DNA of 64,000 bases, from the sequence record NC_071039.1; one strand, 5' to 3'. The notes below the pieces were generated by a model. The model searched no databases and was not told where the DNA came from. It saw only the letters and a list, made by a program, of their open reading frames with translations. Below, piece after piece: positions 9,167 to 34,425 of the stretch (positions are counted from its first letter, which is position 1; each line of letters opens with the position of its first letter). The position numbers were made by a program, and so were the translations under genes.

Positions 9167-9871
9167 ATGTCCGTACATATCACTCGTCAGCGTACCGACA
9201 AACAGCACGTCCTGGCACTGGCAATCAACGGCGTGGTCATCGGCCAGACGATGGCTACTTACACCACCCCGAGCAAGCGCACCTGGTCGGCGACCGCCGA
9301 AGTCGAGCTGGCAGACGGCACCGTCGTTCAGTTCGAGAAGAAAGAAGTGTTCAGCGCGATCCGCATCACCCGCGAAATCGAGCAGGCGCTCGACGGCAAG
9401 GAACTGGCGGCCAAGTACACCCCGGAACCGAAAGTTCCCGGGCAGAAGGGTCCGAAACCGCTCACCGACGAAAGCCGGCTCAGCAACGCGATCGCGATCG
9501 TCAAGGCGGCCATCACCCACACCGGCTTCGACGAAGCTACCCTGGTGTTCGACGGGGTCGACAAGGCCACCTTCGAGCAGAACAGCACTTCCGTCGGCAA
9601 CAAGCTGCGTCGCCTGGGCTTCGTCTTCGAACTCGGCGCCGGCAAGGCGAACAGCGGCAAGGGCTTCCTGATCAACCGCAAAGCGCAGGCCGAGGCAGAA
9701 GCTGCCGAACGCAAGGCCAAGCGCGATGCCGAGAAGAAGGAACGCGAAGAAAAAGCGGCGGCTGCCAAGCGCGAAGCTGACGAACGTAAGGCCAAGCGCG
9801 AAGCCGAACGCGCCGAAAAGGTCGCTGAAAAGAACGCAGCGATCGCCGGTGCGGCACAGGAAAGCAAGTAA
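9167..9871 (+). CDS. GC-rich paralog family member 1 (VFSAIRI domain plus Lys/Glu/Ala coiled tail), 234 aa
   Basis: AGAGG RBS, tandem promoters, terminator; domain shared with 27937 and 33964. Confidence 0.9.
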   Translation: MSVHITRQRTDKQHVLALAINGVVIGQTMATYTTPSKRTWSATAEVELADGTVVQFEKKEVFSAIRITREIEQALDGKELAAKYTPEPKVPGQKGPKPLTDESRLSNAIAIVKAAITHTGFDEATLVFDGVDKATFEQNSTSVGNKLRRLGFVFELGAGKANSGKGFLINRKAQAEAEAAERKAKRDAEKKEREEKAAAAKREADERKAKREAERAEKVAEKNAAIAGAAQESK

Positions 9872-9886
9872 TTGCCCAACTGCGCC

Positions 9887-9918
9887 GAAAGGGGAGCAAT
9901 TTGCTCCCCTTTCTTCAT
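9887..9918 (+). terminator. Intrinsic terminator
   Basis: gaaaggggagcaa-t-ttgctcccctttc followed by T-rich tail. Confidence 0.8.
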
Positions 9919-9941
9919 GACCATATAATCTATATACTACT

Positions 9942-10166
9942 GTGTCTTTAACTATATTTTCTATATCAGCTAGTTTGTATGCAATAACTTGGTATTCTAT
10001 GCCAGCGACACAATGCTGTTATATAGACATAATAACACGCGACGCTGATATTTTTATAACCTATCCATTTTATAATAACATACTTGTATCTAAAATTATT
10101 TCTAATACAATACCTGTAGGAAGTTATGAACACTATATTAGAGATATGTCGTGGAATAAGAAATGA
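9942..10166 (+). CDS. Satellite microprotein-family member, 74 aa
   Basis: GTG start, SLTIFSISAS resembles the xIFxxS motif. Confidence 0.5.
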   Translation: MSLTIFSISASLYAITWYSMPATQCCYIDIITRDADIFITYPFYNNILVSKIISNTIPVGSYEHYIRDMSWNKK

Positions 10167-10300
10167 TCATATAACAGTCAATAATTTTACATATGACTAC
10201 TATCTAGAGGTAAACACACCTGCGTTTTCTTTAATGATAATTATTCCGACAGTTCCTATATTAGACAATACTTGCATTACTTTTATAAAAAAGTATTAAT

Positions 10301-10468
10301 ATGAATATATTCTTTATATCAAACGGTCTATCTAATATAATATATCACAAAGATAATTTGATACAACATAATATACATATGATAGATATTGAGATTAATA
10401 ATTCTGCTGTTATTTGGCTTACATATTCTTTCAATATTGCTAAGGTATCATTTAAATATATTATCTAA
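10301..10468 (+). CDS. Satellite microprotein-family member, 55 aa (not in ORF track)
   Basis: MNIFFISNGLSNII... Confidence 0.6.
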   Translation: MNIFFISNGLSNIIYHKDNLIQHNIHMIDIEINNSAVIWLTYSFNIAKVSFKYII

Positions 10469-10630
10469 TTCATTTTCTTATTGTATGAATTGCAATTGCA
10501 AATTACTCTTATTTGTAATTGCATATAAACAATCAGTTGCTATTAAAAGTATTTGCTGTTAATATATTATATAACAGTGCAATTGATATTTTAAAATACA
10601 GTGTGCAATACATCTTACATGTATTAAAAT

Positions 10631-10858
10631 TTGTGTGTTACTTATTTTGCATTAATGATTAATATACCTCTCTTACAGTACAAAACTAATACTATAAACA
10701 ATTTGTTCGGGCGATCGTTCTCGAAAAGTATACAAGTGAGAGATGACAACCTAATTATACTTGTTAGTTTCTATATAGAAGGTTCTAAATATAGAAAATT
10801 TGTATATAACAAAGAATACCTCGAAGGGATTTCAGCATATGCAAACAACAATCGTTAA
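10631..10858 (+). CDS. Hypothetical protein
   Basis: ORF only; start uncertain. Confidence 0.4.
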   Translation: MCVTYFALMINIPLLQYKTNTINNLFGRSFSKSIQVRDDNLIILVSFYIEGSKYRKFVYNKEYLEGISAYANNNR

Positions 10859-11105
10859 TGCCCTAAAATCTATTAATGTAAAGTATTCGGATATATTTTA
10901 CACAAACGGTAATTTGTGTAATACTGTTACAATACGAAATATTCGCAAAAACGGTAAATTAGATTCGGCAGAACAAATTAATGTCGAATCAGTTGTGAGC
11001 AATTATTTGATTCAAAAAGACTTAAATTTGCCCTTTTCTATTCAATGGGCAAATAATGATTGCTGCGAAGAGTATACCACACTTATTCTCTTCTTCAGAA
11101 AATAG
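10839..11105 (+). CDS. Hypothetical protein, 88 aa
   Basis: ORF; GAAGGG upstream of ATG 10839. Confidence 0.6.
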   Translation: MQTTIVNALKSINVKYSDIFYTNGNLCNTVTIRNIRKNGKLDSAEQINVESVVSNYLIQKDLNLPFSIQWANNDCCEEYTTLILFFRK

Positions 11106-11363
11106 TGTATGATTGTATTAAAAAGATATATTCGTTTGCATAGCATATACAGATTGTCCTACTATGCGCACAACATACATTTTAGCAAAACAAAGAAGAT
11201 AATGCTTTACGTAGGAAACGCAGGTCCCGTACCCGTAACATGACAGTATATAGCGTTAAAATGTGCATTTTTTGCACGATTTTGCGGGGTATGCGTTACA
11301 AGCAATACACACATACTGCTTTTAAAATGCATGCTTACATGCGCTTTGTAGGGGGTTTAAAAC

Positions 11364-11576
11364 ATGCTTAAATTAGTTACCACTGTGCTATACAACGTCT
11401 GTGTAGCTTCGTTGATAATGATTGTGTTTGTATGTGGTATAAATTTAGTAATGTATATAGATAACAATACTGACAATAATCCAGTTGTTATCTTTATTTC
11501 CCTTCTATCGGTTATTTGGGGCGTTGCGCGGATAAGCTATATGTTTGTTACTATCCAATTTCAGTCCAAGAAATAA
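11364..11576 (+). CDS. Small two-TM membrane protein, 70 aa
   Basis: AGGGGG RBS; two hydrophobic segments. Confidence 0.65.
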   Translation: MLKLVTTVLYNVCVASLIMIVFVCGINLVMYIDNNTDNNPVVIFISLLSVIWGVARISYMFVTIQFQSKK

Positions 11577-11591
11577 AAGTATTGGTAACAT

Positions 11592-11933
11592 ATGATAGAT
11601 AAAAACGGAAATACGGAAGACTTTGATTTTGATGATGCATGCACTATAACTGATCTGCCTGTTCCTCTTCAGCAAAAAATACAATCATATAAATTAAATA
11701 AAATATTGGTTATGGTTGCAATCCTTAAATATTCGAATATAAAACAAGAAATTGGTTGTTTCGCTATCATATGGGATCATATAATAAAAATAACGGTTGA
11801 AGTAAAATGCAATCCGTATGCAGAAACACACATACTCATGCATGCGCATGTATTTTCTAATTCCAATTCATGCACTCATAGTGTATTGCTGAATTACAGA
11901 AACAAATATTTACCCACCAATTATTATAATTAA
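11592..11933 (+). CDS. Hypothetical protein, 113 aa
   Basis: ORF in tight operon. Confidence 0.65.
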   Translation: MIDKNGNTEDFDFDDACTITDLPVPLQQKIQSYKLNKILVMVAILKYSNIKQEIGCFAIIWDHIIKITVEVKCNPYAETHILMHAHVFSNSNSCTHSVLLNYRNKYLPTNYYN

Positions 11934-11934
11934 T

Positions 11935-12339
11935 ATGGAAGATATTCTTAAAATTGCTAAACTAATCGGGTACGTAAACATACATGCAAATAAACATTTT
12001 CAGTATGGTTTTAACAAAGATATGGAACATGTATGTGTTAGTGCTAAGAGTAGGACAAGTATAAAGGGAATAAAATACCTTTATGTAGTAATGAATATAT
12101 ATTATATATATTGCCAGCAAGAAAGTGTTGCCGTTATATTAAACGAAGTAAACACTGATGAAATGCCTGTATTAGACAATCTTTATGCTAAGCTCAATGA
12201 TTTAGTTACACATAAATCTATTATAAAATTTAAATATACAGAAATAACACAAGAACAAATAGATTTGTTGAATAATAGTGAAAGATATATAGTATATTTT
12301 GACTCTAATTTAGAATACGGAATAGCTTCGTTTTATTAA
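11935..12339 (+). CDS. Hypothetical protein, 134 aa
   Basis: ORF in tight operon. Confidence 0.7.
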   Translation: MEDILKIAKLIGYVNIHANKHFQYGFNKDMEHVCVSAKSRTSIKGIKYLYVVMNIYYIYCQQESVAVILNEVNTDEMPVLDNLYAKLNDLVTHKSIIKFKYTEITQEQIDLLNNSERYIVYFDSNLEYGIASFY

Positions 12340-12352
12340 TTTTGAGGAATAT

Positions 12353-12550
12353 ATGAAAAAACAAACAGGATTTACAGATTGGCCATTGATTAGTTTGGGT
12401 ACAATTATTATCTTGTGTGTATGGGTATTAATTCTACAATACACAGAAATAAATGTACTAGAAGAAAAATGTAACAAAGTAGGTGGTATTTTTAATAACA
12501 CTGTTTGCATACGGTCAGATGCAGTTATTAATTTAGATAAGGTAAAATAA
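12353..12550 (+). CDS. Small single-TM protein, 65 aa
   Basis: GAGGA RBS; N-terminal hydrophobic helix. Confidence 0.75.
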   Translation: MKKQTGFTDWPLISLGTIIILCVWVLILQYTEINVLEEKCNKVGGIFNNTVCIRSDAVINLDKVK

Positions 12551-12551
12551 A

Positions 12552-12809
12552 ATGCCAAAACTTTACGTTAACAAAAAACATGATACCATTTATCTTCAAT
12601 TAGATCATTTCTCATCTAATACTGTATCTCCAATTAATTATAACGAAGATGTAGAATATGTAATTGATAGGATCCGTAGTCTGCACAAATCCGGCTTCGG
12701 ATTTAGTCATATGAATACTCTACAAGAATATCTTACGGCAAGAACAGAACAGGATAAGAAGTTTAAGCTTAAAGTAGAAGACTTTGAAGTAGTATCATTT
12801 AAGATTTAA
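12552..12809 (+). CDS. Hypothetical protein, 85 aa
   Basis: ORF coupled to upstream gene. Confidence 0.75.
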   Translation: MPKLYVNKKHDTIYLQLDHFSSNTVSPINYNEDVEYVIDRIRSLHKSGFGFSHMNTLQEYLTARTEQDKKFKLKVEDFEVVSFKI

Positions 12810-12830
12810 AATCATACATAATCAAAGTAT

Positions 12831-12859
12831 TTGACATTTGATGTGTATACTAGTATAAT
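12831..12859 (+). promoter_or_regulatory. Perfect-consensus sigma70 promoter
   Basis: TTGACA-17-TATAAT. Confidence 0.85.
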
Positions 12860-12865
12860 TTGCTC

Positions 12866-13398
12866 ATGCTGTCGTAACAGCTACTTTGTTCCATTTACAA
12901 GCAGCTCTGTTCCATTACTGGATATTGGTAGTAGAAACTATCCCCATCGTGCCCACAGTATTGTTCTGTTAGAGACAGATTAAAGCATACAAAAGTGGGT
13001 TATTTAAATTATGATTTTGGGTGCTGAAGTATAGTCGTTAGACAAGGATATGTCTAATGTTGCAAAGGACTATGCGAAACGTATTATATATCTTATCCGA
13101 TATTAGATATGTAATAAAAGGATGAAGCTCTGGTAGAAACAGAGTGTAATTCTTGCTTGTATTTCACACGGATATACAAAAGAATATACACACCAACTTC
13201 AGCATTGATGTAAATTTTCTAGCATAGGTATATAACATCGATGTTCCGGGATTCATTGGAAACAATGAGAGAATGATGTAATCTGAGGAAAAAGGTCCCC
13301 GCCTCGTCCATATTACGAAATGGTTTTGAGTACTTATGCCCTCGTCCTATATTGGCATATGGGTTTTATATTTCTCCCGTAATTACGGGAGAATATAA
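12866..13398 (+). ncRNA. Candidate large structured ncRNA of about 530 nt (RNA-C)
   Basis: Consensus promoter, no ORF of 60 aa or more, long-range helix 13022-30/13196-204 enclosing several hairpins, GAAA tetraloop hairpin 13253-68, terminal hairpin 13372-93. Confidence 0.65.
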
Positions 13399-13720
13399 TT
13401 TCCTGAACCTACTTGGAAATGGACGCTTCTGCTGTGCAAAGCACAGCATCTAAGGGCCTTCACCCTTACCGCTAAGAGCAAGAGCAAAAGCAATATAATT
13501 ACAAATAAGAATTAATTATTGTTTAGTTTTATCGTAATGAATATGAAGATAAAAACTAAACAATAATTCACATGTAGCGTTAGCTACTGTGAATATCTAC
13601 TATAGTATTAACCATATATGTATACAAGGGCATAATATGACTATTACTTGTTGACAATATGATATATGTGTTACACTGTGTAAATGTACATTACAATGTT
13701 TTGATTATTAGGAACATACT

Positions 13721-14305
13721 ATGTCATTATCTTTGACTGCTGCTATTAATCGATATACTAGTCTAATAGAAGAAAATTTCAAAATAAATTATCTGAGGCA
13801 GTTTGAGTCAGGATATATCTCGTATAAATTACTAAGAAATAAAACATTCATACATACTGAAATATCACATGGACGTGATTATATAAAGGTAATTATTTCT
13901 TATACATATATAGAAAATAATGTTGAATTAGATATAAAATCATCTATTGTACATTCGTATATTTCTACTACTGATTGCTCTAAATTTAGAGTAGGAGATA
14001 TAAGAATGTTTTACGATTCAGTTCCTCGTGGAAATGTTTTTAATATTAAAGAGAATACTCAAGTTAGCTGGGCAACAGCTAATATTGGAATTCACGAGAA
14101 TCCGTTTAATCTTAATTATATTTCGAACAATAAGTATATTCGATTAGAAACAGGAGATATATTTGTCTGTATTAATGATAGTATGGTAAATGAACTACAA
14201 GAACATATGCATGTTCATTCTATATGTACTGACAAAACAAAGAAGTTTTATGTAAGAGAAATTGATTTAAATATGCTACATTACAAAAAACACATTATGG
14301 AATAA
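13721..14305 (+). CDS. Hypothetical protein, 194 aa
   Basis: AGGA RBS, long ORF. Confidence 0.8.
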   Translation: MSLSLTAAINRYTSLIEENFKINYLRQFESGYISYKLLRNKTFIHTEISHGRDYIKVIISYTYIENNVELDIKSSIVHSYISTTDCSKFRVGDIRMFYDSVPRGNVFNIKENTQVSWATANIGIHENPFNLNYISNNKYIRLETGDIFVCINDSMVNELQEHMHVHSICTDKTKKFYVREIDLNMLHYKKHIME

Positions 14306-14308
14306 AGA

Positions 14309-14857
14309 ATGAACTACAAAGCATTAGAAGTATTTTATTTCTTTCTAGAACATTACAAGGTAAATCCAGTCGCTGACTTGGAATTTAAATTCGAACCCTC
14401 AGGTAGTGATGATCAATCTAAGCGCAAGTCATCACTGTCGTTTGTTAAACGTATTGGTGTTCTTACTCCTTCATTCAACGAATTATACGAAGTTCAGAAT
14501 CGATTCATGACAGATCTTCGAGAAATGAATGTAGTATATAAGATAGGATTTAATTATAATGCATTCAACGTATTAGCACCTTTGTATGCGAGATATGAAA
14601 AGAATGTAAAAGAATTTCGTCGACTTTTAAAGAAATACTCAAGTTTCAACGAAGTAACAGAATATTACAAAAAAGCCAACAACATGTTACCGGACAATGT
14701 ATACGAAACAATGAAGGAAGATTTTTCATTGTTTAATGACGTTACTACAAAGAGGTTATCTGAAATAAAACTTTGTTATCCTAACTGGCAAATATGGGAT
14801 TCTGAACATCCCAACTGGGAAACAATAAATCAACTTTATAAGAATGCAAAGAAATAA
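14309..14857 (+). CDS. Hypothetical protein, 182 aa
   Basis: Long ORF followed by terminator; C-terminus shared with 18104-18427. Confidence 0.85.
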   Translation: MNYKALEVFYFFLEHYKVNPVADLEFKFEPSGSDDQSKRKSSLSFVKRIGVLTPSFNELYEVQNRFMTDLREMNVVYKIGFNYNAFNVLAPLYARYEKNVKEFRRLLKKYSSFNEVTEYYKKANNMLPDNVYETMKEDFSLFNDVTTKRLSEIKLCYPNWQIWDSEHPNWETINQLYKNAKK

Positions 14858-14858
14858 T
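14816..14858 (+). repeat. Direct repeat copy 1 (43 bp, 40/43 identical to 18386-18428)
   Basis: tgggaaacaataaatcaactttataagaatgcaaagaaataat. Confidence 0.9.
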
Positions 14859-14867
14859 GCATATTTA

Positions 14868-14895
14868 GAAAGGGAATTATAATTCCCTTTCTTTT
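14868..14895 (+). terminator. Intrinsic terminator (AAAGGG...CCCTTT family)
   Basis: gaaagggaatt-at-aattccctttc-tttt. Confidence 0.8.
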
Positions 14896-15015
14896 TGGAT
14901 CTATATTAGCAAATACTAATTAATATTATTTGCACAAATTTAATCCTATTGTGTTTTCTATTTTGAAGTGCTACATTACATGTAGTTGCATAAAACTATA
15001 TACAGGAGAAATGAT

Positions 15016-15573
15016 ATGTGCTATGCATGGGATATCAAAGACGGGGATGATATCGAAGTCGAAGCAGTTATGGATGAACGAAGCTATGAGTGGACCGGCA
15101 AGTTACGTATCATCCAGTATCGGACCCTTCAATCAGCTCAGTGGCGGGTTATTATCAATATAGTAGAATTTTGGAGTCATTCTACTGAAAGTATACTGAA
15201 CGAACTCGGTATAGAAGCTAAACACATCACTAAAGGATATGACACACTTAGTATGGTTCGTTTCCCGGAGGTTGATCACCTATTTGGTGTAACACCCGAT
15301 AATGCAGATTATGTAACTGTTAACCACAGTGCAGTAGATATTTCTAACAGTTGGTTTGTTGCAAAAAACATAAAAGCAGTTATGTATCATTTGGGATCTG
15401 AAATCCAGATCACTCCGTGGTTTGTGCGTAAAGATAGTAGCGAGTCAAATTTCAATTGTATTGATCGATTAGTAGCTCTAGTAAAAGAGAATACTGATGT
15501 TGACACGTATCAGTACATCAAAGTAGGTTGTCCTGAGGACAAGTCATTCTACTTTGCGTGGATAGACAAATAA
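15016..15573 (+). CDS. Hypothetical protein, 185 aa
   Basis: AGGAG RBS before ATG 15016. Confidence 0.8.
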   Translation: MCYAWDIKDGDDIEVEAVMDERSYEWTGKLRIIQYRTLQSAQWRVIINIVEFWSHSTESILNELGIEAKHITKGYDTLSMVRFPEVDHLFGVTPDNADYVTVNHSAVDISNSWFVAKNIKAVMYHLGSEIQITPWFVRKDSSESNFNCIDRLVALVKENTDVDTYQYIKVGCPEDKSFYFAWIDK

Positions 15574-15700
15574 TTCGTTTGCTATACGTACTAATACGTT
15601 GTATACTGTTAGTATGTATAGCAAAAGTAACATATAACGTTTTGATTTAATGGACCCCTAATATGAAAAAAGAATTTGAATTGAGGTGCCCTACGAGTAG

Positions 15701-16195
15701 GTGTTCGAGATGGAGCAAATAGTGAATATGCGAGAAGTGACATTTCTTTCCGCAGTGGATGCCAGCAAGATCGAGACGCCGAGCAACGTCATCAGCATCG
15801 GCAGCAAGGGTGATTGGTATGCCTTTGCCTGCGATCACAAGCGCGTTCTGCGGCTGGAGTTTGATGACGTAGACGGATACGTGGGAAGCGATGGCTTTCG
15901 AGTGTTCAGCCACATTGACGCCAAGCAGATCCACGACTTCGTGAACGAGTGTGGTGATGAACCGATCATTGTTCACTGCCAAGCAGGCATGAGCCGATCC
16001 GCTGCGGTTGCCAAGTTCCTGGCTGACAAGCGCGGCTACACCTTGAACCTGTCGAAGCCTTGCTTAGGCACTACACAATTCTACAACCGCCACGTCTACG
16101 GAACGTTGAACCTCAACAACGCCGAAAGCATGAGCGCCTATTACGCAGAGATGGAGCTAGCCGACCGGACGCGTGGCCATACAAAGGAGTCCTGA
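15701..16195 (+). CDS. Protein-tyrosine/dual-specificity phosphatase-like protein
   Basis: Catalytic loop VHCQAGMSRS (HCxxGxxRS) and upstream FDD acid loop; start uncertain. Confidence 0.85.
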   Translation: MFEMEQIVNMREVTFLSAVDASKIETPSNVISIGSKGDWYAFACDHKRVLRLEFDDVDGYVGSDGFRVFSHIDAKQIHDFVNECGDEPIIVHCQAGMSRSAAVAKFLADKRGYTLNLSKPCLGTTQFYNRHVYGTLNLNNAESMSAYYAEMELADRTRGHTKES

Positions 16196-16197
16196 TC

Positions 16198-16497
16198 ATG
16201 CCTGACATGAGAGAAGAGTTTGAAGCCGCAATCTTTGCGGAAGTGAATGAACAGCGGGCTGCTGAAGGTGAATTTGTCCTTCAGCATCCAGAAGGGCTAT
16301 TTGCCCGCGATGACGATGGCTCCTACTTGATCCGTTGGGTCAAGAGCGCATGGTGGGCCTGGCAAGCCAGCCGCGCAGCTCTGAGAGTGGAGTTGCCGAA
16401 ACCTCACCCTGCATTTGAGTACGCACCTAGAGCCAAGGTTTTCAATATAACTGACGTTGAGGTAGCCCTCCAGCAAGCCGGAATCGAGGTGAAGTGA
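16198..16497 (+). CDS. Pseudomonas-prophage-type hypothetical protein, 99 aa
   Basis: AAGGAG RBS; MREEFEA...AWWAWQASRAAL.VELP pattern typical of temperate-phage early genes. Confidence 0.75.
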   Translation: MPDMREEFEAAIFAEVNEQRAAEGEFVLQHPEGLFARDDDGSYLIRWVKSAWWAWQASRAALRVELPKPHPAFEYAPRAKVFNITDVEVALQQAGIEVK

Positions 16498-16644
16498 ATG
16501 AGAACGCCCATCTTCATCGGCGGATCAATTGGCATAGGAATCGCCTATCTGATGAATCCTGAATATCCCGCTATCGCGCTTGCAATGGTGTTTAGCGCGG
16601 GTACCTCATTGTTCATTCACTATCTATCTGAGGTATGGCCATGA
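16498..16644 (+). CDS. Small two-TM membrane protein, 48 aa (not in ORF track)
   Basis: MRTPIFIGGSIGIGIAYLMNPEYPAIALAMVFSAG...; coupled both sides. Confidence 0.6.
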   Translation: MRTPIFIGGSIGIGIAYLMNPEYPAIALAMVFSAGTSLFIHYLSEVWP

Positions 16645-16715
16645 CCGACCACGCAGAGCTGCGGCGGCTGGCTAAAGAAGTGATCCGAATTGAACGAAAT
16701 GAGGATGCAGCATGA
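16641..16715 (+). pseudogene. Truncated Ead/Ea22-like N-terminus, 24 aa
   Basis: MTDHAELRRLAKEVIRIERNEDAA; ATGA overlaps both sides. Confidence 0.5.
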
Positions 16716-17248
16716 GCATTGACTGGAGCAAGGCACCAGAGGGTGCGACGCACTACCAACCGGAATCACGCGGCTTCCATGCGGCATGGTTCCGACTTCA
16801 AGGGGGGAAGGCTCGCGAAATGTGGGTCGTGAGACCCAGCCGCGTGCTTGAGCACATCATCGATCCGACTGTCTTCGACGAGAGCATGCAGAACCTGATC
16901 GCCCGCCCCGTAGAACCTGCCACCTGGAACGGCCAGGGTCTACCGCCGGTTGGCCTGATGGTGGAGTGGAAGGCAGGCCTTGATCACGACTGGCAGCGCG
17001 TAACTGTGCTTGCCTACGCCAATGGCGACGCGTGGTTTCAGCCCGAGGATGGCCCGTCTTTCATCGTCGGCAACCCGGCAAACTTCAGGCGTATCCGCAC
17101 CCCCGAGCAGTTGGCCGCCGAGGAGCGGGAAAAGGCGATTAATCAGATGATTTCTGATGCTGGATACGTAGATCCGAAGATTGGCACATTTGTGGCTATG
17201 CGCAATCTCTACGACGCCGGCTACCGGCGCCGGGAGGAAGGGAAATGA
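16712..17248 (+). CDS. Pseudomonas-phage-type hypothetical protein, 178 aa
   Basis: MSIDWSKAPEGATHY N-terminus and WNGQGLPPVG motif. Confidence 0.85.
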   Translation: MSIDWSKAPEGATHYQPESRGFHAAWFRLQGGKAREMWVVRPSRVLEHIIDPTVFDESMQNLIARPVEPATWNGQGLPPVGLMVEWKAGLDHDWQRVTVLAYANGDAWFQPEDGPSFIVGNPANFRRIRTPEQLAAEEREKAINQMISDAGYVDPKIGTFVAMRNLYDAGYRRREEGK

Positions 17249-18428: not shown

Positions 18429-18454
18429 TGAAGTAAAGTGAAAGAACTATCATT

Positions 18455-26371: not shown

Positions 26372-26372
26372 T

Positions 26373-26600
26373 ATGGGCGGTCTTGCTAATATAGTTGCAT
26401 GCATAGCTTCTATTGTTGCAATTGTTACTGGAAATATCTGGTATTTTATCGCACTATTGCTATGCACAGCATTTATGTCGCCCGAACGAAAAGGATCATT
26501 AATTGATGTATTTTCGGTCATTGTCGGGATTGGTGCTATATTTAACGGAGACATTGCATGGGGCATAGTGTTCATAGCATTAGTGATAATAGTTAAATAA
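26373..26600 (+). CDS. Multi-TM membrane protein, 75 aa
   Basis: GGGGGA RBS; hydrophobic. Confidence 0.75.
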   Translation: MGGLANIVACIASIVAIVTGNIWYFIALLLCTAFMSPERKGSLIDVFSVIVGIGAIFNGDIAWGIVFIALVIIVK

Positions 26601-26629
26601 AAAGGAAGGGGGTTAAACCCCTTCCTTTT
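26600..26629 (+). terminator. Intrinsic terminator (family)
   Basis: aaaaggaagggg-ttaaa-ccccttcctttt. Confidence 0.85.
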
Positions 26630-26643
26630 ATTGCAGGTGTTAA

Positions 26644-26793
26644 ATGTCATCAATTTTTTATCTTAGCAAATGGACAGAATACATAGTAATTTTAAACAAT
26701 AAGAGAATAAGGTTAAGTACAGCGAAATATTCTATAGGATATGTATCACTAGAAACACCTCGTCGCACATTTTACTGGACACTTTTTGGATGA
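26644..26793 (+). CDS. Satellite microprotein-family member, 49 aa (not in ORF track)
   Basis: MSSIFYLSKWTEYI... Confidence 0.55.
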   Translation: MSSIFYLSKWTEYIVILNNKRIRLSTAKYSIGYVSLETPRRTFYWTLFG

Positions 26794-27035
26794 AATACAA
26801 TAATCATATCTAATTAGCTACCTACATTTATATCAAAAACCATTCTATGAAATATATTTCCTAAATCATATTACAAAAGTTATATTTGAATTTTGGATTC
26901 TTATCTCAACCTTGCATTGCAATATAAAATGCGAATATGAGTGTGCTGTATGTGTTTGCATACGCATGTACATACGCATAAACGTATTAAGAAATACAAT
27001 TTATTTTATCCTATACGATTATCTTTAATACCTAT

Positions 27036-27380
27036 ATGTTGTTTGATAATAAAAGTATAATAAGTAAAAGACATTATCCATTGTATAATGGTTTTAATAT
27101 ATTTCGCTGTAGTGTCGGATGTATATATTTTTCATATGATAAAATGTCATTTATTCACGACATATTCATGCAAACCATTTCGTTGTTCCTTACGACGTTA
27201 TTATTGTTTTTACTTATAACTCCTTTATATTATATAGGATTGAAAAATCCAGTCAATATAACTACATTTGTTTCGTGTTTAATAATAACCATTCTTATAA
27301 CAAGTTATTATTTTATGTCAGTTTTGACTTATATATTCTGTATTACTGTTCAGTCAATAATTTATAAAAGAAAGAAATAA
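27036..27380 (+). CDS. Hydrophobic hypothetical protein, 114 aa
   Basis: ORF; may be two fused microgene modules. Confidence 0.45.
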   Translation: MLFDNKSIISKRHYPLYNGFNIFRCSVGCIYFSYDKMSFIHDIFMQTISLFLTTLLLFLLITPLYYIGLKNPVNITTFVSCLIITILITSYYFMSVLTYIFCITVQSIIYKRKK

Positions 27381-27385
27381 TTTAG

Positions 27386-27457
27386 TTTCAATATCTTTTT
27401 CTTTTTCAATATCTTTTTCTTTTTCAATATCTTTTTCTTTTTCAATATCTTTTTCTT
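27386..27457. repeat. 18-bp tandem repeat x4
   Basis: (tttcaatatctttttctt)4. Confidence 0.9.
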
Positions 27458-27936
27458 TATCTTTTATCATTGCAAATACAAATAATAATTATTCTTATTT
27501 GCATTTAGTGATGTAAATAATTCTTATTTGTAATTGCTATTAATTCTTATTTGCTACAATAGATAGAATAAGAATAATTCACATTTGCAATGCCGCTAAA
27601 AGCGCTGTAAGCGCTGTATGTTGCGTAGTAGTGCTAAGCAATGTATTAGTACAGCTACGCGCACAAACGCTGTTATACGCGCTTGTAGCGCGTTTTAGGG
27701 CCCATGCGCATGCGTATACCTGCAGCTTTACATAGTAAAATGCAGAAAAGACGTCGTCTATTAACGTGTCTGTCTTAATAGAAATATACAATTGTACAAT
27801 ACCTGCAAAATTCTACACACTACAGACATGCAAACAAGCAACGTGCTTGCAAGCATAAAAGTTTTTAAAAAGTAGTAGACACAGTGTAGCATCCCTAGTA
27901 AGCTACACACATAAACAACACAACGGAGTACAAGCT

Positions 27937-28407
27937 ATGTCTAATGTAAGCATCCCTGCAGTAACGGTAGAGAACATCGGCACCCTGCGCATCGTGCGCA
28001 CCGCTAACAAGGAGGTCGGAAGTGTGCTCGACCTAAAAGTTAACGGGGTAGTAGTAGGGCAAGCTTTCCCGCTCTACAGCACAAAAACCCAGCGTAGCTG
28101 GAACGCGAGCATGCACGCTACCGTTAACGGCGTAGAGGTGCAGTTTGCACAGGAAGGCGTGTTCAGTGCAATCCGCATTGCACGGGCGTTCGAGGATGCA
28201 GTAAAGCATGCCGTTAGCAACGGCGAACAAGGGCAACCCCTCCCCGCGCCGGCGGCGGCAGAAGCGCAAGCAGAAGCGCAAGCAGAAGCGCAAGCAGAAG
28301 CCCCGGTAGCGCAGACCGAGGATGCGCCGGAGACCCCGGCAGCCGAAGCTAAGCCCGCCCGCAAAGGCGGCAGCAAAGGCGGCAGCAAAGGCGGCAGCAA
28401 AAAGTAA
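27937..28407 (+). CDS. GC-rich paralog family member 2 (VFSAIRI domain plus AEAQ x3 / GGSK x3 tail), 156 aa
   Basis: GGAG RBS; domain shared with 9167 and 33964; terminator follows. Confidence 0.9.
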   Translation: MSNVSIPAVTVENIGTLRIVRTANKEVGSVLDLKVNGVVVGQAFPLYSTKTQRSWNASMHATVNGVEVQFAQEGVFSAIRIARAFEDAVKHAVSNGEQGQPLPAPAAAEAQAEAQAEAQAEAPVAQTEDAPETPAAEAKPARKGGSKGGSKGGSKK

Positions 28408-28420
28408 GCGCTGCTAACAC

Positions 28421-28449
28421 AGGAAAGGGGCAACTGCCCCTTTCCTTTT
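28421..28449 (+). terminator. Intrinsic terminator (family)
   Basis: aggaaaggggc-aact-gcccctttcctttt. Confidence 0.85.
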
Positions 28450-28575
28450 ATGTCCTAGTTGTAAACGCAAATTAATCTTATTTGCATTTGCACAAGTCAA
28501 TCTCCGGTTGCATTACTGCGGTAAGATGTTAGTATGTGTTTAGCAGTAACACATAACTAGCAGGAGCAATAGACA

Positions 28576-28824
28576 ATGGCTAAAGTATTGCATGTTGACA
28601 GCATCGGCAACATCGCCGAAATGTTTACATCTGTAGACCTCGATAGCGCCTTGTTGCACGCAATCAAGCGCTGTGCAATGATGGGCAAGGTTAATGTTGT
28701 TGGTCCCAACGCTCCTGTGTTTGCTATCCACTACGACGCACTGACAGCGTACGACGTGCAGTGGCGCCTCGTTCCTCCGGGCTGCGGCGTTACCGTGTAC
28801 GTCATTGCCGAAGACAGCAATTAA
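28576..28824 (+). CDS. Hypothetical protein, 82 aa
   Basis: AGGAG RBS. Confidence 0.8.
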   Translation: MAKVLHVDSIGNIAEMFTSVDLDSALLHAIKRCAMMGKVNVVGPNAPVFAIHYDALTAYDVQWRLVPPGCGVTVYVIAEDSN

Positions 28825-28835
28825 GGAGAGACACC

Positions 28836-29138
28836 ATGAATCTCGTTCATTTGTGGATCAACGGGCGTGTTGTGACTGCCCGCAAGGTTGTCAGTAAACA
28901 CACTGTCCGCAATCCGAACAGTCCGATCGATATCGAGACTATCGACGTTGTTCGACTGCGTCTGCCCCGTGGTGTTCGTGCTAGCAGTTGGGCACTCCGT
29001 AAGGCAGTGTACCAGCTCATGGAGCAAAGCTGTAGCTGCTCGAGAGACTGTTGTGGACACTGGTTCGGCGGCGCACGCAAGATCTACATTAACGGCAGAG
29101 ACATCAGTGTCGTTGCCGGGTACCAGCGCAATTACTAA
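28836..29138 (+). CDS. Hypothetical protein with Cys motif (CSCSRDCCGHW), 100 aa
   Basis: AAGGAG RBS before ATG 28836. Confidence 0.8.
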   Translation: MNLVHLWINGRVVTARKVVSKHTVRNPNSPIDIETIDVVRLRLPRGVRASSWALRKAVYQLMEQSCSCSRDCCGHWFGGARKIYINGRDISVVAGYQRNY

Positions 29139-29168
29139 AGGAAAGGGGGCAACTGCCCCTTTCTTTTT
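29137..29168 (+). terminator. Intrinsic terminator (family)
   Basis: aaggaaagggggc-aact-gccccttttctttt. Confidence 0.8.
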
Positions 29169-29357
29169 ATCCATTAATGTGCAAACGCGAATTATTCTTA
29201 TTTGCACAGGGCAGTGAGATGCGAATGCAAACAAGAGGCATTCTTGATACGGTCGGGTGATAATAATTGTTCACAAAAAGAAAAAGCTTGCGTTATGCTA
29301 CACAGGTGCTAGTATGTGTATTGCAGTACCTATAAACATTAATAGCAGGATAAGAAA

Positions 29358-29677
29358 ATGGTTGACTTTAAAGGTTTTAACTGGGACGCACTAGCCCGGA
29401 GGACAACGTTTCCATAGTTTCCATTAAAAATCACTACGAGGAACTCCTACAAAGTTTTGTTGACAACGGCATAGACTATGTGTTAGTCCAGCTGTCCCAG
29501 GAACTGCCGCACTACGAGGATTCAGATTATCCCTGCTACAAATTGGTTGACAAGTATGCAGGATGGATAGTAGGCTGGGACTACTACGGATTTGTTGTGG
29601 AACGCATGGACACGCACCTTTTCTTTGACAACAGCACTGCAAAGGGTGTAATGGACTTCCTGGAAGCCAACGGCTAG
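29358..29677 (+). pseudogene. Probable frameshifted gene of about 106 aa
   Basis: ATG 29358 with AGGA RBS reads MVDFKGFNWDAL, then the -1 frame continues SPEDNVSIVSIKNHYEELLQ... into the ORF-track 29480-29677 frame. Confidence 0.55.
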
Positions 29678-29680
29678 CAC

Positions 29681-29711
29681 AAAAAAGGAAGGGGCGCAAG
29701 CCCTTTTCTTT
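29681..29711 (+). terminator. Intrinsic terminator (family)
   Basis: aaaaaaggaaggggc-gcaa-gcccttttcttt. Confidence 0.75.
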
Positions 29712-30120
29712 TGTCTGCAATTTCTGTGCAAATAAGAACTATTACAGTTGTGGTAAAAGCACAATGCAAATAAGACGCATTCTTGATTAGGCCTGATAAT
29801 AAGTTCTTATTAACAACAAAGAAACTGAATAAGAATAATTCTGAAAAAAATAACCCTGCAGCGTAACACAAAGAGCTTGCAATTTGTAAGCCCTTTTTAA
29901 TATGCATTTGTTAAGATTAGTTCTTATTTGCAATGATAATATCCCCGCCTTACGAATAAGAATTAATCTTAGAACAAATATTCACTTGATTTTTCTCCCA
30001 ATATAGTGTATGTCTATATTAGATAAGATTAAGTCTTGTTTGCTTGTTACATTTTATATGTTGCAATGCTAAGGCAATGATACTATTATATGTACAGTAA
30101 TATAACCCAGGGGATATAAC

Positions 30121-30426
30121 ATGTCAGCAGAATTGAAGCGGTTGTTAGAGATTTTTCCAACCTTTAAATCATTCATTTATGCTAAAGGGGCATATGGCAT
30201 TGATGTTTGGAAGGCTACGGGTAGTGTTACTTTGGAACAGGTATCCAATGCTGTTAATGCAGGTAATGCTGAATGGCAATGTAAGGGTGATCCAACTTGC
30301 AGCCTGGAACAAAACAGCATGTATATTTTCATTACTATTCAGGAACCAGACTACACAGGAATGGTTGATATTGATGTTTGTGTAAAGATTACTAACGGTA
30401 ATGAAGTAAGTTATCAAATAGCATAA
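30121..30426 (+). CDS. Hypothetical protein, 101 aa
   Basis: AGGGGA RBS; terminator follows. Confidence 0.8.
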   Translation: MSAELKRLLEIFPTFKSFIYAKGAYGIDVWKATGSVTLEQVSNAVNAGNAEWQCKGDPTCSLEQNSMYIFITIQEPDYTGMVDIDVCVKITNGNEVSYQIA

Positions 30427-30459
30427 TAAAGGAAAGGGGATTAATTCCCCTTTCCTTTT
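30427..30459 (+). terminator. Intrinsic terminator (family)
   Basis: aaaggaaagggga-ttaat-tcccctttcctttt. Confidence 0.85.
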
Positions 30460-30644
30460 ATGTATAATATACTTATAAATAAGAATTAATTTTATTTAAT
30501 TAAAATTAGAATAATTCTTATTTGCACGATCCCGCACTTATAACACAAGTATATTACAAAAGCAAGAATAAAATTAACTTGACACCTATATGTAGAATAT
30601 AGCACAATGTGTTTATAAATTATATTACTACAGGAGTGTTAACC

Positions 30645-31016
30645 ATGTTCAAATGCAAATTGTTTGTAATAGATCCTGTTTATAACAACCTTTGCTACAC
30701 TCAGCAAATATGGCTTGAAAGTGACATAAATGTGTGTAGTCAAATAAAGCGTATTATTTCTAACGCAGAATTGGCATGCGCAAATAGGATAGTAAATAAT
30801 CCTCATAGTCCACTATGCGTTAAATCGGCAGCATTAAAAATGGTTATGGACGGGCGCATTGACATCGAACTCAAAGATGTCAATAGTTACGTTGATCAAT
30901 ATAAAGACATTCTCCCTAGCACAAATATTTTGGGTGTTTTTAAACCGACGTTTTTATCTAACTGGAAAGAAGAGTGTGAACTTTATTTCCTCACTTGTGT
31001 TGAAAAAGACAATTAA
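30645..31016 (+). CDS. Hypothetical protein, 123 aa
   Basis: AGGAG RBS before ATG 30645. Confidence 0.8.
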   Translation: MFKCKLFVIDPVYNNLCYTQQIWLESDINVCSQIKRIISNAELACANRIVNNPHSPLCVKSAALKMVMDGRIDIELKDVNSYVDQYKDILPSTNILGVFKPTFLSNWKEECELYFLTCVEKDN

Positions 31017-31027
31017 TATAATATAAT

Positions 31028-31315
31028 ATGGAAGATGATTTAAAAAATATTGTTTCGAAGACTATCTTATCTAATAAAATTAAGATAGTCTCTTTACGTA
31101 CTGTAGTAAAAACTCAGTATAAAAGAGTAGACTTCCATTATAAGATAGAATGTGAAAATAGTTCTACAAAACGTAATTTGGTATTTGCCCGTATATGCAA
31201 ACCATTAGAACACACATTAGGTTCAAAACTTGTTTATGTAGATATTGTGCCTATCAAGTTTAAGAAAGATGAAATGCCATCTACTATTCTATCGGTAAGT
31301 GTAATGACCAATTGA
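31028..31315 (+). CDS. Hypothetical protein, 95 aa
   Basis: ORF. Confidence 0.7.
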   Translation: MEDDLKNIVSKTILSNKIKIVSLRTVVKTQYKRVDFHYKIECENSSTKRNLVFARICKPLEHTLGSKLVYVDIVPIKFKKDEMPSTILSVSVMTN

Positions 31316-31466
31316 TATTTGGATTTGATTTTTGGAAATATAATAGTAATTCTTATTTGCAATTATAATAAATTCTTGTTTACTTTTAAAATAAAAGCAA
31401 ATTCTAGTTGCATAGCTAGCGGCACTGTGCTAGTATATTAAAAAATAAAGACAGGAGTGTTATTAC

Positions 31467-31649
31467 ATGCAAACCAAAGCAACCGAGTTGGCAGTAGGCG
31501 ATGTTGTTTTCTACAATGGCATGAAAATGACTATCCAGAAAATTTCTAAAGGTCGGTGTGCAATAGATATTACACTAGTAAATACTTTGGCTAAACTCAC
31601 ATCTTATGTGACAGTCGACTATGACGAAGAATTTGAAGAAGTATTATAA
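31467..31649 (+). CDS. Small SH3/KOW-like beta protein, 60 aa
   Basis: AGGAG RBS; KATELAVGDVV pattern. Confidence 0.75.
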   Translation: MQTKATELAVGDVVFYNGMKMTIQKISKGRCAIDITLVNTLAKLTSYVTVDYDEEFEEVL

Positions 31650-31666
31650 TGCAGAAATTATAGTCA

Positions 31667-31695
31667 TAAGAAAAGGGGCAATGCCCCTTTTCTTA
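31667..31695. terminator. Bidirectional terminator between convergent genes (family)
   Basis: taagaaaaggggca-a-tgccccttttctta. Confidence 0.8.
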
Positions 31696-31932
31696 TAGTC
31701 CCAACAAATGCTTGCCACTTTTGACTTGCATCATACGTACTTTCTTTTTGCGCATTTGCGTTCTTACGTTCAGGCTGTTGGGACCTTTGAAGCTATACAG
31801 TATTTCAGTAGTCCCGTCTTCATAGTTGCGTACCACATTTGCAACAATTTGACTACCTTCCTGGAACGCTTCGATAAACACGCAGTAATTGAAATTTTCC
31901 TTGTTAGCGTTATGTGCGCGTAGTTGCATCAT
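31693..31932 (-). CDS. Hypothetical protein, 79 aa; the only clear minus-strand gene of the accessory region
   Basis: AGGAG RBS on minus strand; ends in the shared terminator. Confidence 0.8.
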   Translation of the reverse strand: MMQLRAHNANKENFNYCVFIEAFQEGSQIVANVVRNYEDGTTEILYSFKGPNSLNVRTQMRKKKVRMMQVKSGKHLLGL

Positions 31933-32285
31933 TTTCTGTTACTCCTGCGTTGTTTTGCTTTGTTATGTGTAGTATACGCTATGTGTGTGCTAATGCAAGA
32001 ATTTTCTTCCATTTTCTTTCAAATAAAATGTTATTAGCATCTATTTTGTTATAACATTTTCTACTACTTCATGTTTTGCAAATAAGAACTATTCGCATTT
32101 GCATTCCTACCTATCTGCCTAAAATTTAGGCAGCCTGGGTGATTGTCTCCCCCGCCCTATTACTGGTCTCTGTATAAAGATAATAGCATATTTGTATCTG
32201 CATGCAAGCATTTTTTGTAGAATTTTCCTCTTGACATTCCTTGCTATAGGCTACATTATGCACACACAGAGCAGGAGATACCATC

Positions 32286-32666
32286 ATGGCACTCATAGCA
32301 TTAGTAGCAACTGCATATGACAAAGAAGGCGATAAGTTCGACTATGTTCGATATCTTAAAGCTCATATCAATTTTGTGTCTGCTCAAGATCAACTGAAAG
32401 AATGGATCAAAAACAAAATTGATGCAAGTATAGCAGAAGTTAAAATCGGATTACGTGCAGAAATCGAAGTATTGGCCTATTTGGGAAACTATATAAGCCA
32501 TAGTCAACGGATTATTAGTCCCGCCGGGATCATCATGTACATTGTTCTTGATGAGAAGTATGTTAATGAACTTCACGGTCAAATTTCTAATGCAATTGAT
32601 TGTGAAGAAAAGAAACATGTAATAAAGAAAGAAGAAAACGTCACTTATATTGATTTTAAAAAATAA
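32286..32666 (+). CDS. Hypothetical protein, 126 aa
   Basis: AGGAG RBS; TTGACA-17-CATTAT upstream. Confidence 0.8.
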   Translation: MALIALVATAYDKEGDKFDYVRYLKAHINFVSAQDQLKEWIKNKIDASIAEVKIGLRAEIEVLAYLGNYISHSQRIISPAGIIMYIVLDEKYVNELHGQISNAIDCEEKKHVIKKEENVTYIDFKK

Positions 32667-32667
32667 C

Positions 32668-32696
32668 TTGCATTAGCTGTAATGTATATGTATTAT
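32668..32696 (+). promoter_or_regulatory. sigma70-type promoter
   Basis: TTGCAT-17-TATTAT. Confidence 0.6.
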
Positions 32697-32702
32697 GTAC
32701 TC

Positions 32703-32859
32703 AAGTTTGCAGCAAGACGTATTAATTTGTTTTGCTGTTAGTTGTAACTCCTGCTACCAAGTATGTGTTGAGCTAATGCTCCTGACTTGGTTCTTGGTAC
32801 ACTGGTTTGGGTGTACCGTTCTTGAGCTGCAAAGGGCTTGCCCGGAGCAGCTTTTTTTT
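32703..32859 (+). ncRNA. Candidate sRNA / attenuator of about 155 nt (RNA-D)
   Basis: Hairpins 32710-37, 32757-90, 32796-817; terminator agctgc...gcagct plus T8. Confidence 0.55.
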
Positions 32860-32940
32860 GACTAATAATATTCATTTGACAAAAAATAATAATTAAAAAT
32901 ATAATAGCTTAGTGTATAACTTTCCCATATTAGGCTAATT

Positions 32941-33312
32941 ATGAAATTTGTTATTGCTGCTATTGCAATGTCTTTGTCCACACTAGTTTCTGCAGAATCT
33001 ATTTCTGAAGTTAAGATAACTAAAGAAACATGCCTTACACTTCTAGAATTATCTAAGATTCATGTTGATATGGTAGTAAATGAACATATGAATGCAATAC
33101 AAATTGCATCTCATATGGATATTGTATCTAATTTATATAAGAACAATAATAGTAAATGGCTTGCATTCTTGCAGGCTCAAGCAAATATTTCAAAATTAAT
33201 TGATGACGTATATGAGTTTTCATCTACCGAAGAAAGAAAGATTATTCCTTTAGCCATATTTAACGGTTGTATGGGAAGAGTTGGTAATACTTTTGAAATA
33301 TATAAGAAATAA
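32941..33312 (+). CDS. Putative secreted protein, 123 aa
   Basis: Signal-peptide-like MKFVIAAIAMSLSTLVSA; own TTGACA-18-TATAAT promoter. Confidence 0.8.
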   Translation: MKFVIAAIAMSLSTLVSAESISEVKITKETCLTLLELSKIHVDMVVNEHMNAIQIASHMDIVSNLYKNNNSKWLAFLQAQANISKLIDDVYEFSSTEERKIIPLAIFNGCMGRVGNTFEIYKK

Positions 33313-33313
33313 T

Positions 33314-33631
33314 ATGTATGTATATGTAGTCCACGGAATAGTCAATACAGGCGTTGAGACTAATATTTGTGATATAGAACGTTATGTTACAGTTAACGAC
33401 TTCTACGCTATAGAAAAGTTTCTTACTTTTAAAGAACATATAGCAGCAAACCCAAACTTATATATACGATTAATTACTACTGGATTTAATACTAAAAAGA
33501 ACATATTAGAATTAGAATTAAATTTATCGAAAAAAGAATATGTAGTATCAGGTTTTAGAGTTACATCAACTAATATAAATGAATGTATTGAATATTACCT
33601 GTGTAGAAGGATATTTAAGTTACATGATTGA
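33314..33631 (+). CDS. Hypothetical protein, 105 aa
   Basis: ORF coupled to upstream gene. Confidence 0.7.
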   Translation: MYVYVVHGIVNTGVETNICDIERYVTVNDFYAIEKFLTFKEHIAANPNLYIRLITTGFNTKKNILELELNLSKKEYVVSGFRVTSTNINECIEYYLCRRIFKLHD

Positions 33632-33963
33632 ATTTATATTAAAATCCCTTTTATTAACTTCAGTTGTCAGTGTTGGCATACTACTGATATTCATTATTAT
33701 TTCATTGTTAATGTTTGGCTTAGCACCGATAGTTCCATTCCTTATTTAATTTTAATTATTTGCAAGCAAATGCAAATACGAATAATTCTTATTATCCAGC
33801 AGGCCACTGTACCTAATCTTCGTTAGATAAAATCTATTAGAATCTACAAAGTCCATTAAAACGTTCAATTGTACATGGTGGCCAGATCTGCATATACTAC
33901 ACACATGAAGCAAGCAAACAGCGCTTCATAAACAAACCCAAATACAGCTAGGAGTTCCAAATC

Positions 33964-34425
33964 ATGACCAAAGCAACCGTTACCGTCGAGCAATCCGCAA
34001 TCAAACTGGTTCGCCGCAACCTGGAAGGGCACCGGCAAGCCCTGTTGCTGAACGGCGTCGAAGTAGGCAGCAGCGAAGCGTTCTACAAGACCAAAACCCA
34101 GCGCACCTGGTCGGCGAAGATCGACGCCAACATCAACGGCAAGGACATCGTCCTCGAACAGAAAGGCGTGTTCAGCGCGATCCGGATCGCCCGGGCGATG
34201 GAACAAGCAATCCTGTTCATCCTGACCGACGGCAAAGAAGGCGCCGAGATGCCGGCCAGCACGCTGAGCAAGGAAGAGCAAGCCCACAACCTGGTCAAGG
34301 CAGTAGTCCAGGTCGCCGACCATGCAGTTCAGTCCGGCGGCGCCGGCAACGGCGAAACCGAGGCAGCAGCCCCGGCGAAGAAAGGCAGCTCGAAGAAGCG
34401 CAAAGAAGCCCAGCCGGAAGCATAA
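33964..34425 (+). CDS. GC-rich paralog family member 3 (VFSAIRI domain plus Lys/Ala tail), 153 aa
   Basis: AGGAG RBS; domain shared with 9167 and 27937. Confidence 0.9.
   Translation: MTKATVTVEQSAIKLVRRNLEGHRQALLLNGVEVGSSEAFYKTKTQRTWSAKIDANINGKDIVLEQKGVFSAIRIARAMEQAILFILTDGKEGAEMPASTLSKEEQAHNLVKAVVQVADHAVQSGGAGNGETEAAAPAKKGSSKKRKEAQPEA

Follow-up and report, generated by a model that had tools for sequence, protein, structure and literature searches.

Several described "ORFan" takeover proteins of virulent phages (such as T7 Ocr, T4 MotB and Ndd, and LUZ24 Mip) are small, are produced from a strong early promoter of their own and are made first and in quantity, and their genes lie at the end of the genome that enters the cell or is transcribed first (PMC4635203 for Mip). 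Here, we describe three genes of the Pseudomonas jumbo phage vB_PaeM_PA5oct (PA5oct), EST35_0038, EST35_0086 and EST35_0098, whose organization is reminiscent of these systems. The PA5oct genes differ from them in forming a three-copy family in which a constant domain carries swappable tails, and in the unusually strong host-like codon bias of the trio in an AT-rich genome; moreover, no sequence or fold similarity of the family to Ocr, MotB, Ndd or Mip was found. The stretch analyzed (the window, 64,000 nucleotides) corresponds to bases 1-64000 of the PA5oct genome (MK797984.1; 100% identity by megablast), which has 286.8 kb and a guanine-plus-cytosine (GC) content of 33.3%. Ten close relatives were found by megablast at 95-97% identity (MIJ3, Callisto, Paride, Cassandra, Deifobo, Ettore, PAC2, 30-2, 30-3 and the RefSeq entry of PA5oct). 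All three genes lie within the 39-kb long terminal repeat (bases 1-39080), and their open reading frames (ORFs) were present exactly where a first-pass annotation, made from the sequence alone, had placed them:

9167-9871, plus strand: EST35_0038, 234 residues; family core at about residues 3-78, ferredoxin-like middle domain at about 101-170, and a 60-residue single helix rich in Lys, Glu, Arg and Ala
27937-28407, plus strand: EST35_0086, 156 residues; family core, acidic Ala/Glu/Gln/Pro linker with AEAQ repeats, and a basic tip of GGSK repeats
33964-34425, plus strand: EST35_0098, 153 residues; family core and linker, ending in the basic tip PAKKGSSKKRK

In GenBank, EST35_0086 and EST35_0098 are annotated as hypothetical, and EST35_0038 as a "structural protein", with ESI-MS/MS (tandem mass spectrometry after electrospray ionization) as the evidence.

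The three proteins are ancient paralogs that belong to a single unnamed family of small proteins, found so far only in phage-like contexts. Pairwise blastp comparisons gave E values of 1.3e-15, 4.7e-16 and 2.5e-26 over 61-145 residues, with 40-46% identity, and the invariant columns include N-G-V..G, Y.T...R.W.A, G and VFSAIRI.R..E.A, bearing out the shared motif noticed in the first pass. At the nucleotide level the genes are merely 70-76% identical, and only over the core. Thus, they are old duplicates rather than products of recent gene conversion. Whole-genome profile searches found exactly three copies of the family in PA5oct.

When 1.84 billion cluster representatives were searched exhaustively by HMMER with the core profile, 26 matches were obtained, 11 of them below 1e-10, and about 20 of the 26 are small proteins (75-255 residues) from metagenome assemblies. 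The homologs have in common the signature NG..VG.A.A.YKT.TQRTW and an amphipathic helix with an F-S-A/V-x-K/R motif. The complete arrangement of EST35_0038, with core, middle domain and charged helix, is found again in two of them (P0012 and P0029), while P0005-P0011 resemble EST35_0086 and EST35_0098, and the contig coding for P0009 is syntenic with gp86-gp88. Every homolog context that we inspected was phage-like, consisting of arrays of small phage genes or of T4-like modules. Among 50,697 phage records the only carriers were Wroclawvirus, and a motif scan of bacterial and archaeal genomes (185,579 species) produced four chance matches only. The domain had not been recognized in the first pass, and this stands: Pfam, PHROGs, NCBIfam and PADLOC gave nothing consistent for 3-24 family members, and a sequence-profile search of the PDB gave no match. 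A match of P0026 to Ribosomal_L28 (E 4e-4) was set aside; it falls within an N-terminal extension, and the rest of the family does not share it. Word-index protein searches with a single protein or with a profile gave self-matches only, because the low-complexity tails swamp the words. No account of the family or of its codon signature was found in the papers on PA5oct, MIJ3, Callisto and Paride or in a full-text literature search.

Each copy in PA5oct is a self-contained expression unit that combines its own sigma70-like promoter and leader with a strong ribosome-binding site and a terminator hairpin, as follows:

8925-8959, plus strand: UP-like A/T-rich tract of the EST35_0038 unit, seen in the sequence
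8960-8988, plus strand: promoter-like site P1 of EST35_0038, TTGACT-17-TAAAGT, from sequence and scan; RNA contig depth starts in the 8970-9166 bin
9055-9083, plus strand: promoter-like site P2 of EST35_0038, TTGACG-17-TACACT, from the scan; the RNA contigs do not resolve its use
9092-9117, plus strand: small hairpin in the 5' untranslated region of EST35_0038, by folding; weak, no better than shuffles (z -0.9)
9154-9158, plus strand: Shine-Dalgarno sequence AGAGG of EST35_0038, seen in the sequence
9887-9913, plus strand: terminator hairpin of EST35_0038, followed by UUUCUUC; fold -22.1 kcal/mol, z -4.8; RNA depth drops past about 9954
27788-27835, plus strand: promoter-like block of EST35_0086, TGTACA-17-CACACT, from upstream alignment, sequence and folding; missed by the simple scan
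27925-27928, plus strand: Shine-Dalgarno sequence GGAG of EST35_0086, seen in the sequence
28421-28446, plus strand: intrinsic terminator of EST35_0086, an 11-bp stem then TTTATGT in the scan; fold -22.1 kcal/mol, z -4.2
33870-33898, plus strand: promoter-like site of EST35_0098, TGTACA-17-TATACT, from the scan and from alignment to the region upstream of EST35_0086
33950-33954, plus strand: Shine-Dalgarno sequence AGGAG of EST35_0098, seen in the sequence
34439-34464, plus strand: hairpin of EST35_0098 resembling a terminator and having a poor U-tract; fold -20.6 kcal/mol, z -5.3; missed by the simple scan

The Shine-Dalgarno sequences are located 8-9 nucleotides before the ATG in all three genes. 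A simple scan for T-runs passes only one of the three terminator hairpins (28421-28446), and all three fold with -20.6 to -22.1 kcal/mol (z -4.2 to -5.3). The units were therefore read correctly in the first pass, which had assigned to each gene its own ribosome-binding site and terminator and to EST35_0038 two tandem promoters with a UP-like tract; two promoter-like sites are present, and the A/T tract precedes the first. Alignment of the regions upstream of EST35_0086 and EST35_0098 revealed in both the pattern CAATTGTACA ... ACTACA.ACATG, the promoter-like block reading CAATTGTACA-N17-[CT]A[CT]ACT. A 16-nucleotide word common to the upstream regions, TAGACRCAGTGTRTAG, was not more frequent than expected by chance. 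The leaders of EST35_0086 (27826-27856) and EST35_0098 (33903-33929) both start with ACAUG and form a hairpin immediately after it; with z values that are not strong (-1.3 and -2.8), this element may be a shared stabilizer of the 5'-end.

Transcription of PA5oct depends on the host RNA polymerase, and at 5 min most of the terminal-repeat genes from gp34 to gp105 show high transcription (Lood et al., 2020, PMC7318152). The EST35_0038 region is contained in four RNA sequencing runs, all from a single study of 2020. Their contigs have no depth at 8576-8969; depth extends from the 8970 bin to about 9954, and an adapter-tagged RNA fragment starts at 9008, with an end at 9859. Because the contig limits match promoter P1 and the terminator, a monocistronic EST35_0038 unit is supported. 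In one run the summed contig depth of EST35_0038 greatly exceeded that of the AT-rich genes downstream, and it was low in two others in which the neighboring gp35 and ncRNA001 were still high, a pattern that would fit an early, transient RNA but is not relied on here, contig depths being unreliable. The early and strong expression proposed in the first pass is thus upheld by the transcription of the repeat at 5 min, by RNA contigs that end at the predicted promoter and terminator, and by a codon bias beyond composition, described below. Just upstream, most of the coding sequence of EST35_0037 ("extensin-like protein", window 8503-8724) seems to lie beyond the end of an abundant transcript, which makes its coding status doubtful: in the four runs, depth is high to about 8575 (ncRNA001) and almost nil at 8576-8969.

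The GC content of the three genes is 0.60-0.62, compared to 0.33 for the genome. Among the 354 ORFs of at least 70 residues called across the whole PA5oct genome, EST35_0038 ranks first, EST35_0098 second and EST35_0086 seventh in GC content at third codon positions (GC3; 0.774, 0.766 and 0.618, with a median of 0.23). The codon bias exceeds the effect of composition, since the effective number of codons (Nc) of the three genes is 33.2 versus 50.9 predicted from GC3; for the neighboring prophage-like cassette gp53-57, Nc is 50.9 versus 57.1 expected. C-ending codons account for 0.81-1.00 of the codons for Phe, Tyr, Asn, Ile and Asp, the codons ACC, GGC, CCG, CTG, CGC and AGC dominate their families, and ATA, TTA, AGA, AGG, CGA, CCA, TCA and CTT, all common in the phage, are not used at all. 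The favored codons are those that Pseudomonas aeruginosa prefers. Selection in the three genes favors C-ending codons and others that a GC-rich host prefers, and the first-pass term "host-codon-optimized" is well supported as a pattern. Homologs are likewise GC3 outliers of their own contigs (0.87 versus about 0.55 in L008, 0.77 versus about 0.45 in L003 and 0.75 versus about 0.38 in L002), the effect being weak in L005 and L006. Such optimization would be sensible if translation must precede the build-up of the 12 tRNAs of the phage.

A fold from 3 sequences was poor, with a predicted local distance difference test score (pLDDT) of 56; AlphaFold2 reached a pLDDT of 93.2 when 24 sequences were used. 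In this model the N-terminal 75-80 residues or so are predicted to be a five-stranded antiparallel beta-meander (strands at residues 5-9, 15-20, 23-32, 38-48 and 53-61), with one amphipathic helix (64-75) packed on the sheet. The signature NG..VG.A.A.YKT.TQRTW spans beta3, a hairpin loop and beta4. The periodicity of the strands suggests packing of conserved Ala, Tyr, Trp and Phe residues beneath the helix, and for this reason the polar/basic hairpin loop K-T-x-T-Q-R-T would be the likeliest functional site. In EST35_0038 the model also includes a folded region that the first pass had not described, a middle domain (101-170) with an alpha-beta-beta-alpha-beta-beta order, followed by a 60-residue helix (171-233). 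The tail of this protein, described earlier as a Lys/Glu/Ala coiled coil, is indeed rich in these residues but is modeled as one long single helix. Foldseek searches of the PDB yielded no match at E<=1e-3. A search of BFVD returned the query itself, its paralogs and unnamed entries only, and one of the ESM Atlas returned unnamed clusters, DUF3126, DUF736 and an integrase, at a template modeling (TM) score of about 0.5. The VIA-wide fold search was dominated by the 60-residue helix of EST35_0038 and hardly probed the core.

The AP2/ERF domain (PF00847), which also occurs in phage HNH homing endonucleases and in the N-termini of integrases, was considered for the core, and the assignment was rejected as unproven. 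Strands beta3-beta5 and the helix of the core model recall the three-stranded sheet followed by a helix of AP2/ERF. On visual comparison, YKT.TQRTW is similar to the start motif of AP2, whose Arg and Trp contact DNA, and GVFSA...ARA.E to the start of the AP2 helix, G.F.TAEEAARAYD; in addition, the integrase found in the Atlas is a structural neighbor (TM 0.53, query residues 21-90). However, the core has two additional N-terminal strands, and no AP2 structure is within the best 50 PDB matches. The Pfam model matched none of 24 members at E<=1, and no candidates emerged when PA5oct was scanned in six frames with PF00847, with the Felix O1 and RB49 controls scoring 42.9 bits. When the family core was aligned by hhalign to four phage AP2 domains, the probability was 1.3% (local) and 0.1% (global), which, given the thin 4-sequence AP2 profile, is not a strong exclusion. 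The family core was also put beside the structures of the single-stranded DNA-binding protein ThermoDBP-RP2 (4psn/4pso), of CapZ beta and of levivirus coat proteins; the levivirus coat protein fold gave no significant superposition on the family model.

The tails are as first described, that is, Lys/Glu/Ala-rich in EST35_0038, with three AEAQ and three GGSK repeats in EST35_0086, and with PAKKGSSKK in EST35_0098. In the close relatives the core is invariant and the tails vary by insertion or deletion of repeats, the basic tip being retained. Across the family there are four classes of tails. The first has an acidic linker and a Lys/Gly/Ser basic tip, the second a tip that is acidic, the third the conserved peptide "MSDLV...GSSL", and the fourth the middle domain with the charged helix. 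The short C-terminal tips PAKKGSSKK, KPARKGGSKGGSK and RGPGRPR are reminiscent of histone H1-like or AT-hook tails; the last is found in the metagenome homolog P0017, whose tail ends in PAKRGPGRPRIKKS, with the AT-hook-like RGPGRPR and its GRP core. Such Lys/Gly/Ser/Pro-rich tips are of the kind that binds the minor groove of AT-rich DNA. The family tips, however, have only 10-18 residues, follow an acidic linker and are missing from much of the family, and no HU/IHF, H-NS/MvaT or H1-like AlgP domain was found in 6-24 members with Pfam, NCBIfam and PHROGs. The idea of nucleoid-protein-like tails is weakened, with basic tips confined to the PA5oct-like subfamily, other members ending in an acidic tip or a different conserved peptide, and a core of roughly neutral charge, whereas the early strong expression and the unrecognized domain of the earlier interpretation both stand. 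The tail pattern speaks for a docking domain that stays constant while the second contacts are exchanged, and against a histone-like function throughout the family.

Tentatively, and with slightly less than even confidence, we regard the three proteins as abundant early modular adaptors, possibly associated with DNA. The terminal repeat with all three copies is transcribed first, by the host RNA polymerase, and the design of the units would deliver protein in bulk within the first minutes, before the phage tRNAs are available. The constant domain would dock on one conserved target via the polar/basic hairpin loop, and the tails would supply a second, lineage-specific contact. Where the PA5oct copies have basic tips similar to AT-hook or SPKK motifs, this contact would most likely be AT-rich DNA, the phage's own genome, and these copies would be abundant early DNA-associated proteins. 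The detection of EST35_0038 in virions by mass spectrometry fits a DNA-associated protein. Several points weigh against this account. The charge of the core ranges from -4 to +9 across the family and is roughly neutral, and several members have acidic tails or no tail; therefore, DNA binding through a basic tail is not the common function of the family. Detection of an abundant protein in virions can be due to carry-over, and the RNA contig depths cannot rank genes by expression. Late structural genes of PA5oct, although highly expressed, are not GC-rich. Codon optimization is therefore no general rule in this phage and seems restricted to a few early genes.

It is possible, if rather unlikely, that the proteins are early host-takeover or anti-defense factors that bind a host protein (RNA polymerase, the ribosome, an MvaT-type xenogeneic silencer or a defense nuclease) and not nucleic acid, in which case the conserved domain would be a protein-binding module and the tails disordered spacers or decoys. 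Early abundant expression from a region that classically carries takeover genes is in line with this, as are the nearly neutral core and, in some tails, a short conserved peptide of the kind typical for docking between proteins. Proteins that neutralize MvaT exist in Pseudomonas phages (PMC4635203, PMC8501957), and a 2025 preprint reports that the terminal repeat codes for a proven anti-defense protein, "gp52" or anti-END1, an inhibitor of the END nucleases that sense hypermodified DNA, and that the DNA of PA5oct carries a modified G (bioRxiv 10.1101/2025.03.31.646159). We matched "gp52" to EST35_0052 (window 15016-15573) by gene number only. The family, however, has no likeness to known anti-defense or takeover families, with no match in PADLOC or PHROGs.

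A bolder form of the DNA-associated reading, which we consider improbable, is that the trio represents a new class of phage "own-genome" chromatin proteins, coating the 33%-GC DNA via the hairpin domain and the AT-hook-like tips. A bulk early coat would keep host silencers that seek AT-rich DNA (MvaT/MvaU), or nucleases, off the phage DNA, and the GC-rich gene bodies would themselves evade silencing. In a variant, the family would provide the missing clients or adaptors of a phage CobS/CobT machine.

There is also little probability that the family as a whole serves as adaptor, substrate or regulator of a MoxR ATPase/VWA pair of the CobS/CobT type, with the PA5oct copies being relocated and amplified versions of a gene whose ancestral place is just upstream of cobS. 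In three distinct phage contigs (L002, L005 and L006/L007), a gene of the family is located 0-2 genes upstream of one for a CobS-like MoxR ATPase, which is followed by a CobT-like DUF2201/VWA gene; in L002 the pair comes after the family member and an RtcB gene. PA5oct has a CobS-like MoxR AAA gene (234078-235193; L019:10078-11193), whose product is 52% identical to CobS of L002, and a CobT-like DUF2201/VWA gene (238080-239264; L019:14080-15264). Both genes are GC3 outliers too, in PA5oct (0.67 for cobS and 0.50 for cobT) as in L002 (0.83 and 0.80). Nevertheless, this synteny may merely mirror the common descent of related T4-like phages. The PA5oct genes are about 200 kb apart from the family genes, no family gene lies adjacent to or near cobS in PA5oct, L003 or L008, and a nearby 371-residue AAA protein in L027 is not CobS-like. 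Upstream of cobS in L005 (4850-5468) and L006 (5172-5868) are genes for proteins of about 107 and 122 residues with translations similar by eye, and the 122-residue protein has a look-alike of 123 residues in PA5oct (L019 8181-8552). The place so marked is likely the ancestral site of the family gene, which may have moved from near cobS into the terminal repeat and then triplicated.

That EST35_0038 is a genuine virion protein, internal or injected, with its paralogs as related packaged proteins, seems very improbable. Beyond its GenBank annotation, structural proteins are listed inside the repeat (PMC7318152). However, EST35_0038 is transcribed early from a stand-alone unit distant from the structural modules, and EST35_0086 and EST35_0098 were not detected. 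The mass spectrometry method is very sensitive, as its authors stress. Moreover, EST35_0038 RNA seems to fall in two runs in which that of its neighbors stays high, as far as the unreliable contig depths can tell. Least probable of all, and disfavored, is that GC-richness shows only that the genes were recently acquired by horizontal transfer, from the host or from GC-rich Pseudomonas phages, and says nothing about expression level: some other GC-rich islands do occur in the terminal repeat (GC3 0.54-0.70), but the paralogs all retain an extreme GC3 despite their protein divergence, their bias relative to expectation is far stronger than that of the prophage-like cassette, homologs in phages of unrelated composition are GC3 outliers as well, and neither the exhaustive protein search nor the motif scan of species genomes, with its chance matches, found a cellular homolog.

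Two more GC-rich small genes, EST35_0087 and EST35_0088 (window 28576-29138), follow EST35_0086; GC3 of EST35_0087 is 0.61, and neither gene is named by any family library. In the metagenome contig L008, genes for 82 and 100 residues, equal in size to EST35_0087 and EST35_0088, follow the EST35_0086 homolog. The three-gene block EST35_0086-EST35_0088 thus appears conserved in L008, as judged by gene sizes and order alone. Elsewhere in the window, a 2.2-kb region (36243-38490) with a GC content of 0.53 has two annotated genes only and several long unannotated ORFs on both strands.

The PA5oct-like phages Paride, Callisto and MIJ3 are candidates for therapy, and Paride is known for killing dormant cells. 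Most early genes of these phages are unexplained, and three of them are now grouped as one family with a confident core model. The three genes have the strongest codon bias of the genome, a clear mark of selection for early synthesis in bulk that is seen again in relatives, and they are obvious first targets for work on host takeover in jumbo phages that do not form a nucleus. The codon signature itself offers a general means of recognizing key early genes where AT-rich phages infect GC-rich hosts.

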